Shown here: positions 3,529-3,696 of the stretch, piece after piece
How positions within the stretch are numbered: position 1 is the stretch's first letter
How the letters are laid out: the number at the start of each line of letters is the position of its first letter
Sequence record: MK327931.1
Length of the DNA stretch: 64,000 bases
Direction: 5' to 3' (one strand)
Made by a program: the position numbers and the translations under genes
The notes under the pieces: generated by a model
What the model was told of the DNA's origin: nothing
The model's input: the letters and a program-made list of their open reading frames with translations, nothing else
Database searches by the model: none

Positions 3529-3696
3529 TTATACATGTGGGATAAACATAATGATGTGTGTTTGGACAACTCTAGTGCCATCACTTAAGATTATACCATT
3601 ATCACAAACATCAATCACAGTACCCGTTACCTTTACACCACCAGTAAGATAAAAATCATATATAACGTTAGCATCTATTGTAAAAATATCTTTCAT
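3529..3696 (-). CDS. 55-aa Hfq/Sm-like protein (below the ORF-track cutoff)
   Basis: [55 protein letters not shown] resembles Hfq Sm1 ([23 protein letters not shown]) and Sm2 (VYKHAISTVVP); exactly fills the gap between the nrdB terminator and the next promoter. Confidence 0.55.

Follow-up and report, generated by a model that had tools for sequence, protein, structure and literature searches.

A core gene downstream of nrdB in Rak2-like jumbo phages is predicted to encode an acidic Sm/Hfq-fold protein without the N-terminal helix

What, if anything, is encoded by a 55-codon open reading frame (ORF) wedged between the terminator of a ribonucleotide reductase gene and the next promoter, and how far does its resemblance to Hfq reach? 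The locus lies in the window analysed here, a stretch of 64,000 nucleotides from sequence record MK327931.1, and the initial annotation had recognised in it an Hfq/Sm-like protein on the strength of two peptide stretches that parallel Hfq. Both stretches are present in the ORF, which occupies positions 3529-3696 on the - strand and has an ATG start. Over window bases 3000-4200 the sequence shows 100% identity with Escherichia phages vB_Eco_slurp01, vB_EcoM_G17 and Sharanji, and with PBECO4 the figure is 99.9%; given this near-total identity we take the window to be a piece of an Asteriusvirus jumbo coliphage genome. Asteriusvirus is among the 'Rak2-like' jumbo myophages, of ~350 kb.

The ORF is part of a run of genes on the - strand in which nrdA (4926-7244) and nrdB (3747-4871), the latter encoding the beta subunit of a class Ia ribonucleotide reductase and forming the cistron immediately upstream, are followed by the 55-aa ORF itself (3529-3696, stop codon included), a 77-aa ORF (3233-3466), the gene for a virion protein of 134 aa (2827-3231) and that for a MazG-like nucleotide pyrophosphohydrolase (2096-2833). 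Downstream from the nrdB stop codon (3747-3749), a terminator scan places an intrinsic-terminator-like hairpin with a T-run at 3716-3734, and a Shine-Dalgarno-like GGGT (3704-3707) stands 8 nt 5' of the ATG of the ORF at 3696. The stop codon is at 3531-3529 and is followed by a sigma-70-like, TG-extended promoter for the next gene (TTGGAA-18-TGnTATAAT, 3495-3524), which is the downstream limit of the transcription unit that includes the ORF. As the initial annotation had it, the ORF fills the space between the nrdB terminator (3734-3716) and the next promoter (3524-3495).

The frame is conserved to an extent that identifies it as a gene. In tblastn searches it was found in 71/71 records of Rak2-like jumbo phages at 33-100% identity, in phages of Escherichia, Klebsiella, Salmonella, Erwinia, Yersinia, Serratia, Pectobacterium, Cronobacter and Xanthomonas, a clade made up of four named genera (Asterius-, Alcyoneus-, Mimas- and Eneladusvirus) and of unclassified phages. 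The strongly conserved 77-aa neighbour gives the same record count (71) with an identical host breakdown, and the 55-aa ORF is therefore present throughout the clade. At every locus examined, including those of the most distant metagenomic relatives, the ORF stands directly after nrdB and before the 77-aa ORF, and the order nrdB, 55-aa ORF, 77-aa ORF, an ORF of 125 aa and MazG is kept down to ~30% identity. Every relative also has GGAG, GGA or GGGT 7-10 nt before the ATG, as seen in the upstream regions of the 12 relatives shown. Against Asteriusvirus relatives at 55-75% protein identity, dN/dS is 0.13-0.28 at dS values of 1.05-1.42, that is, with synonymous sites near saturation. A chance ORF in a spacer would be short and might well go uncalled, as this one does in slurp01, G17 and RaK2, but it would not be expected to stay open at 30-75% amino-acid identity across 71 records from four named genera and unclassified phages, nor to combine near-saturated synonymous sites with such a dN/dS. 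We regard that reading as already refuted by these conservation data, its probability being close to nil, and the ORF as a genuine protein-coding gene, a core gene of the Rak2-like jumbo phages; the conservation that the initial annotation made its own proposal depend on is seen, and the gene is under purifying selection. A profile search of 1.84 billion cluster representatives returned only ~25 small relatives, which indicates that the family is confined to this clade. The long matches in the same search (587-1508 aa; repetitive Big_6, InlB-repeat and PPC-type surface proteins) were set aside as beta-strand pattern noise.

The gene had been called unannotated, which is true of some records and not of others. 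There is no CDS at the site in slurp01 and G17, both 100% identical here, nor in RaK2 and K64-1 (GenBank); a CDS is present in Sharanji, PBECO4 (gp470), 121Q (gp34), GAP32_301, CBB_306 and others. Where it is annotated, the product is named 'hypothetical protein' or 'membrane protein', the latter in the RefSeq records of PBECO4, 121Q, GAP32, CBB, fHe-Yen9-04 and BF. The protein matches PHROG 17251 over its whole length (residues 1-55, E=2.2e-31), and this family too is labelled 'membrane protein', in the moron/host-takeover category. The full-length match is shared but the label is unsupported, since the 55-aa protein has no transmembrane segment, and judging from the predicted structures described below the name in RefSeq and PHROG looks like a propagated mis-annotation.

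The position of the gene suggests how it may be expressed. On the - strand the hairpin at 3734-3716 reads AGGGATTC-TAT-GAATCCCT followed by TTTTCTT, or as RNA AGGGAUUC-UAU-GAAUCCCU followed by UUUUCUU, and the hairpin 3' of nrdB is annotated as a terminator in G17. The spacer between nrdB and the ORF measures 38-52 nt in 15 relatives, and in 14/15 of those folded it consists of a GC-rich hairpin and a U-run. Between clades the stem sequences are entirely different (AGGGAUUC, GGACGC, GGAGGC, GGGACAC, GUGGACAC and AGCUGGGG); it is therefore the structure, not the sequence, that is conserved. The Shine-Dalgarno sequence follows the hairpin within ~10 nt, which leaves no room for a promoter, so that expression is probably by read-through from nrdAB, and we infer that the transcript of the 55-aa ORF would be less abundant than that of the reductase. 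A promoter-like site inside the ORF (3684-3655) was discarded as being at chance level, since 16.4 such sites were to be expected and 14 were found. Between nrdA and nrdB there is another strong terminator-like hairpin (4901-4920, - strand; GATCCCGC-TTCG-GCGGGATT and a T-run), also annotated in G17, and a hairpin after each nrd cistron suggests graded read-through along nrdA, nrdB and the ORF. In the Escherichia phage CMSTMSU (MH494197.1, flagged UNVERIFIED_ORG), several short CDSs take the place of nrdA and nrdB, and the terminator hairpin, too, is degraded; these defects probably reflect sequencing or assembly errors, not biology.

Other features of the surrounding block may be mentioned here. 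The 77-aa protein (3233-3466, - strand; PHROG 16437) is much better conserved than the Sm-like ORF and occurs in the same 71 records. Its N-terminal half is acidic and looks helical, and its tail, which ends in NRK, is very basic. The program-made ORF list starts its gene at an ATG at 3496 (87 aa), which shares bases with the TATAAT of the promoter-like site; the start used in G17 is the ATG at 3466, which has the Shine-Dalgarno sequence GGAGAAGAAG. From its sequence, this basic-tailed neighbour could be a partner of the acidic Sm-fold protein; against this, it has its own promoter. Between nrdA and nrdB, an extra ORF of 233-258 aa is found in the Mimasvirus phages XbC2, CBB and GAP32, in Yersinia phage fHe-Yen9-03, in EJP2 and in a metagenomic relative. 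The GAP32 annotation names it 'endonuclease', and neither the window nor RaK2 has it.

How much of the resemblance to Hfq holds at the level of sequence? In a single BLASTP comparison with Hfq of E. coli K-12, residues 16-37 align with Hfq 25-45 with 9/22 identities (E=0.008), and three residues of the window protein, Y16, K22 and G25, fall on Hfq Y25, K31 and G34. When the family profile was aligned with an Hfq alignment using hhalign, residues 11-39 were placed on Hfq 20-48 with a score of 26.6 and a probability of 74%; 60 column shuffles scored 8.9 +/- 1.9 and never above 17.2, and a score of 5.5 was obtained with the alignment reversed. The Hfq set came from a genome scan and comprises only Gammaproteobacteria, at 86-100% identity; the result was unchanged when five Gram-positive and other Hfq sequences were added, which is to be read as supportive only. 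An Sm1-type motif, running from beta1 to beta3 and including the beta2 glycine, is thus present in the family, as seen in the hhalign match and in G25. Of the two parallels drawn by the initial annotation the first therefore stands, while the second, between VQTHI and YKHAI, does not extend across the family, whose consensus at this place is I-P-T-D-K-I. Searched against PDB sequences, the family profile gave sub-threshold matches only, among them Hfq and the Edc3 LSm domain at E 0.3-1.3; Hfq chains were the largest group (3/9, then 10/16), and unrelated chains scored as well or better. Pfam and NCBIfam gave no usable match for the window protein or its relatives, and Pfam none in 13 members at E<=10.

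The predicted structure points more directly to an Sm fold. An AlphaFold2 model of the window protein, computed as a single chain from a 42-sequence alignment, has a mean pLDDT of 91.8 and forms a five-stranded, strongly bent beta-barrel, with strands at residues 12-17, 22-31, 34-37, 42-44 and 48-53 and a 3-10 turn at 45-47. In a Foldseek search of the PDB with this model, the best 50 matches were all Hfq chains, from E. coli, Salmonella, Pseudomonas, Aquifex, Herbaspirillum, Chromobacterium and Neisseria. The model superposes on the best of these with an rmsd of 1.0-1.3 A over 46-47 residues, a TM of ~0.74 and 23-31% identity, at E-values of 3e-3 to 8e-3, which are modest, as they will be for only 55 residues. 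Modelled with its own alignment order, the 36%-identical homologue from GAP32 gave a pLDDT of 85.4 and again only Hfq among its best 50 PDB matches; over both searches the core rmsd to Hfq was 0.9-1.5 A across 46-48 residues and the E-values were 1e-3 to 8e-3. A public BFVD model of the CBB homologue superposes on the window model with a TM of 0.89. These two high-confidence models bear out the Sm-fold prediction with which the analysis began, and the 55-aa protein is predicted with high confidence to adopt an Sm/Hfq-type five-stranded bent barrel. Residues 1-11 are coil in both AlphaFold2 models, without an N-terminal helix. In the Sm family, the N-terminal helix is inessential to the fold and a glycine in the bent beta2 strand is strictly conserved (PMC3710371). 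The fold-level features of Sm/LSm proteins, namely a bent five-stranded sheet and the beta2 glycine, with the helix optional, are found here, the glycine being G25 (55/58 members). Taken together, it is very probable that the ORF is a gene and that its product has an Sm fold. Among the BFVD models there are other uncharacterised phage proteins of 51-74 aa with the same barrel at TM 0.52-0.82 and without sequence similarity, for example in Gordonia phages Waits, GMA2 and VanLee, Escherichia phage mistaenkt and Shigella phage Sd1. Judging from these models, small beta-barrel proteins without the helix may be common in phages and may have gone unstudied there.

A shared fold does not make the protein an Hfq. 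In Hfq, the N-terminal alpha-helix bears Q8 and the rim arginines R16/R17/R19, the Y-K-H-A-I motif and F/Y42 line the proximal uridine pocket, and Y25, I30, K31 and Q33 make up the A-R-N site on the distal face. The 55-aa family is without the helix and hence without Q8 and the rim arginines, and its conserved N-terminal motif, D-I-F-T-F-D-P, has no arginines. The Y-K-H-A-I of Sm2 (Hfq Y55-K56-H57) is not kept, the histidine that the window protein has at the YKH site being found in only 8/58 members, and an invariant glycine, Gly34, is aligned at Hfq F42 or V43. Residues of the distal site are variable, with tyrosine at the Y16 position in 11/58 and lysine at the K22 position in 17/58. Furthermore, 58/59 family proteins are acidic, with a median net charge of -5 and a median pI of 4.46, as against +3 and 9.69 for residues 1-65 of E. 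coli Hfq. On these sequence characters we do not consider the 55-aa protein a member of the Hfq family in the functional sense, and a canonical RNA-chaperone role is disfavoured. The phage RNA chaperone that had been proposed is thus not upheld, the RNA-contact residues of Hfq being absent or not conserved and the family acidic. Nor does the suggested partner, a non-coding RNA at 52.2-52.6 kb, find backing, as the window contains neither an Rfam family at gathering score nor a tRNA, and nothing ties the region to the 55-aa ORF. The region falls within ~830 nt (51903-52737) that have no ORF of at least 60 aa and are flanked by a baseplate-hub-region gene and by endonuclease VII. Only weak repeats are seen in the gap at 51.9-52.7 kb, where G17 annotates just a putative terminator (window 51,914-51,931).

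What the family does conserve is a different set of residues. Y13 (56/57), L17, G19-G20 and G25 are conserved, as are a [R/Y/F]-D-N-G turn before beta3 in which G34 is invariant, an H/R at position 42 followed by I-P-T-D-K-I, I48 (57/58) and an aromatic pair in beta5. From the alignment to Hfq, the conserved D-N-G and P-T-D-K-I turns would correspond to loops 3 and 5. In Sm proteins, the nucleotide pocket around the pore is built from these two loops. In beta3 and beta5 consecutive residues are hydrophobic, so that both faces of these strands are, a pattern that would suit burial in an oligomer or a complex.

We propose that the 55-aa protein uses the edges of beta4 and beta5 either to build an Sm-type ring or to dock on a partner, and that the conserved loop-3/loop-5 surface together with the N-terminal D-I-F-T-F-D-P peptide forms a ligand site. 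Short single-stranded RNAs, nucleotides and proteins are candidate ligands, and the role would be other than that of an Hfq-type sRNA-mRNA matchmaker. The gene product would be made together with the reductase, at a lower level, by read-through of the nrdB terminator hairpin. The statement as a whole, combining a gene, an Sm fold, read-through expression and a non-canonical loop-3/loop-5 binding module, seems to us to have slightly better than an even chance of being right. Its mechanism part, that is, an Sm-type module with beta4/beta5 docking and a loop-3/loop-5 ligand site, is tentative when taken alone, and we would give it somewhat worse than even odds. Several points weigh against it: the pocket is placed by alignment to Hfq and not by superposition, the acidity of the family is a general argument against binding of RNA, small beta-barrels are met with in many settings that have no relation to one another, and Sm modules that lack the helix, Edc3 for example, are monomeric (PMC3710371).

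The last of these points leads to an alternative in which the protein is a helix-less adaptor of the LSm type, an Sm module that stays monomeric and binds a peptide or a protein, as the LSm domains of Edc3 and Lsm14 do, and whose task might be to organise the phage enzymes of nucleotide metabolism encoded around it (NrdAB, the MazG-like pyrophosphohydrolase and DHFR). Neither model has an N-terminal helix, the protein is acidic and without RNA-contact residues, the Edc3 LSm domain is among the weak PDB sequence matches, and the gene has a fixed position inside a nucleotide-metabolism block; the Sm module of Edc3 does not oligomerise (PMC3710371), and there is a precedent in the Hfq of cyanobacteria, which acts through a protein partner, PilB1 (PMC4390875). 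However, the whole block is syntenic in every relative, so that adjacency to nrdB says little on function, and the distant relatives' contigs, which have the same synteny, offered no independent functional clue. The fold, moreover, matches Hfq and not Edc3, and beta3 and beta5, with their two hydrophobic faces, suit burial in an oligomer. We consider an adaptor of this kind unlikely, at perhaps one chance in several. A role like that of the ferredoxin YfaE, suggested by a position after nrdB, was ruled out, the protein having a single, non-conserved Cys.

Two further readings concern Hfq directly. One takes up the poison subunit of the initial annotation: an acidic, helix-less Sm mimic would insert into or cap the host Hfq hexamer, or titrate Hfq partners, and thereby put sRNA regulation out of action during infection. 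The modelled barrel lies on that of Hfq with an rmsd of ~1 A, an acidic protein would face the basic surfaces of Hfq, and the Hfq cores of the hosts are 86-100% identical across the Gammaproteobacteria sampled, Xanthomonas included; since the target is near-invariant, one mimic could serve all hosts of the clade. Many homologues also end in an acidic tail resembling E-T-x-E, which recalls the autoinhibitory acidic C-terminal tip of Hfq itself, but this tail is absent from the window's own protein. Beta4 and beta5 are only 30-40% identical among family members although their supposed target hardly varies, and the helix that contributes to subunit packing in Hfq is missing, which makes such a decoy a decidedly unlikely explanation. 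The other reading, a true phage Hfq that forms a ring and pairs phage or host RNAs, is less likely again. It could draw on the Hfq-type fold of both models, on the match of the Sm1-region profile above the controls and on the coincidence of Y16, K22 and G25 with Hfq residues; set against this, Y16 and K22 are not conserved in the family, F42/V43 is replaced by an invariant glycine and YKH by P-T-D, the rim helix is missing, the median pI is that of an acidic protein (4.46), and there is no Pfam Hfq match. Finally, the small membrane protein of RefSeq and PHROG 17251 has in its favour the label carried by PBECO4, 121Q, GAP32, CBB and others and the window protein's GRAVY of 0.67. The two models, however, show soluble, all-beta barrels in which there is no helix, and on a 19-residue Kyte-Doolittle window only 2/58 members exceed 1.6, the window protein reaching a maximum of 1.14 with a longest uncharged run of 13 residues, so that this assignment is highly improbable.

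With bacterial Hfq (PF17209; for example E. coli Hfq, 1HK9 and 3RER) the family shares an Sm barrel of five strongly bent strands in which a 3-10 turn precedes beta5 and whose core rmsd is ~1 A, an Sm1-like h-Y-L-x-x-G-x-K-h-x-G-x-h that aligns on Hfq 20-48, the conserved glycine in beta2 and an isoleucine at the start of beta5. Unlike bacterial Hfq, it has no helix and no disordered C-terminal domain, is acidic, gives no HMM match and does not keep F42, Y25 or Y55-K56-H57. The cyanobacterial Hfq that binds PilB1 and the LSm domains of Edc3 and Lsm14 are likewise Sm barrels in which conservation of the canonical RNA site is weak or absent. The 55-aa protein differs from Edc3/Lsm14 LSm in being free-standing and not a domain, and neither these nor cyanobacterial Hfq have a sequence relationship to it beyond E ~0.4-0.8. 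Sm/Hfq-like modules are also encoded by archaeal mobile elements, where ZF-Hfq fusions on Thermococcus/Methanococcus plasmids and an Hfq-like variant in Pyrobaculum spherical virus (PSV) have been described (PMC3543421). As with the present gene, these virus- or plasmid-encoded modules lie next to replication or nucleotide-metabolism genes, and the PSV protein is among the BFVD fold matches of the window model (E=0.08, TM 0.68). The archaeal proteins have a different architecture, with zinc-finger fusion, and do not include any from tailed enterobacterial jumbo phages; we found no sequence similarity between these plasmid and viral Hfq-like proteins and the 55-aa family. In a full-text literature search we found no account of a protein with the Hfq fold from Rak2-like or any other jumbo phages, and the 55-aa gene is not dealt with in two papers on Asteriusvirus genomes.

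A core gene of a whole clade of jumbo phages is thus at present either uncalled or labelled 'membrane protein', a name that should give way to 'Sm/Hfq-fold protein'. If the protein binds RNA, it would be an example of an Sm ring that functions although its surface is acidic and its pocket a different one. In the hosts of these phages small-RNA regulation centres on Hfq, and if the protein instead binds Hfq or its partners, it would represent a new kind of host-takeover factor and provide a tool for switching Hfq off. Should the decoy reading, unlikely as we hold it to be, prove true, sRNA regulation would be switched off across all hosts of the Rak2-like jumbo phages, and a viral anti-Hfq protein that makes use of the Hfq fold itself would be known for the first time.
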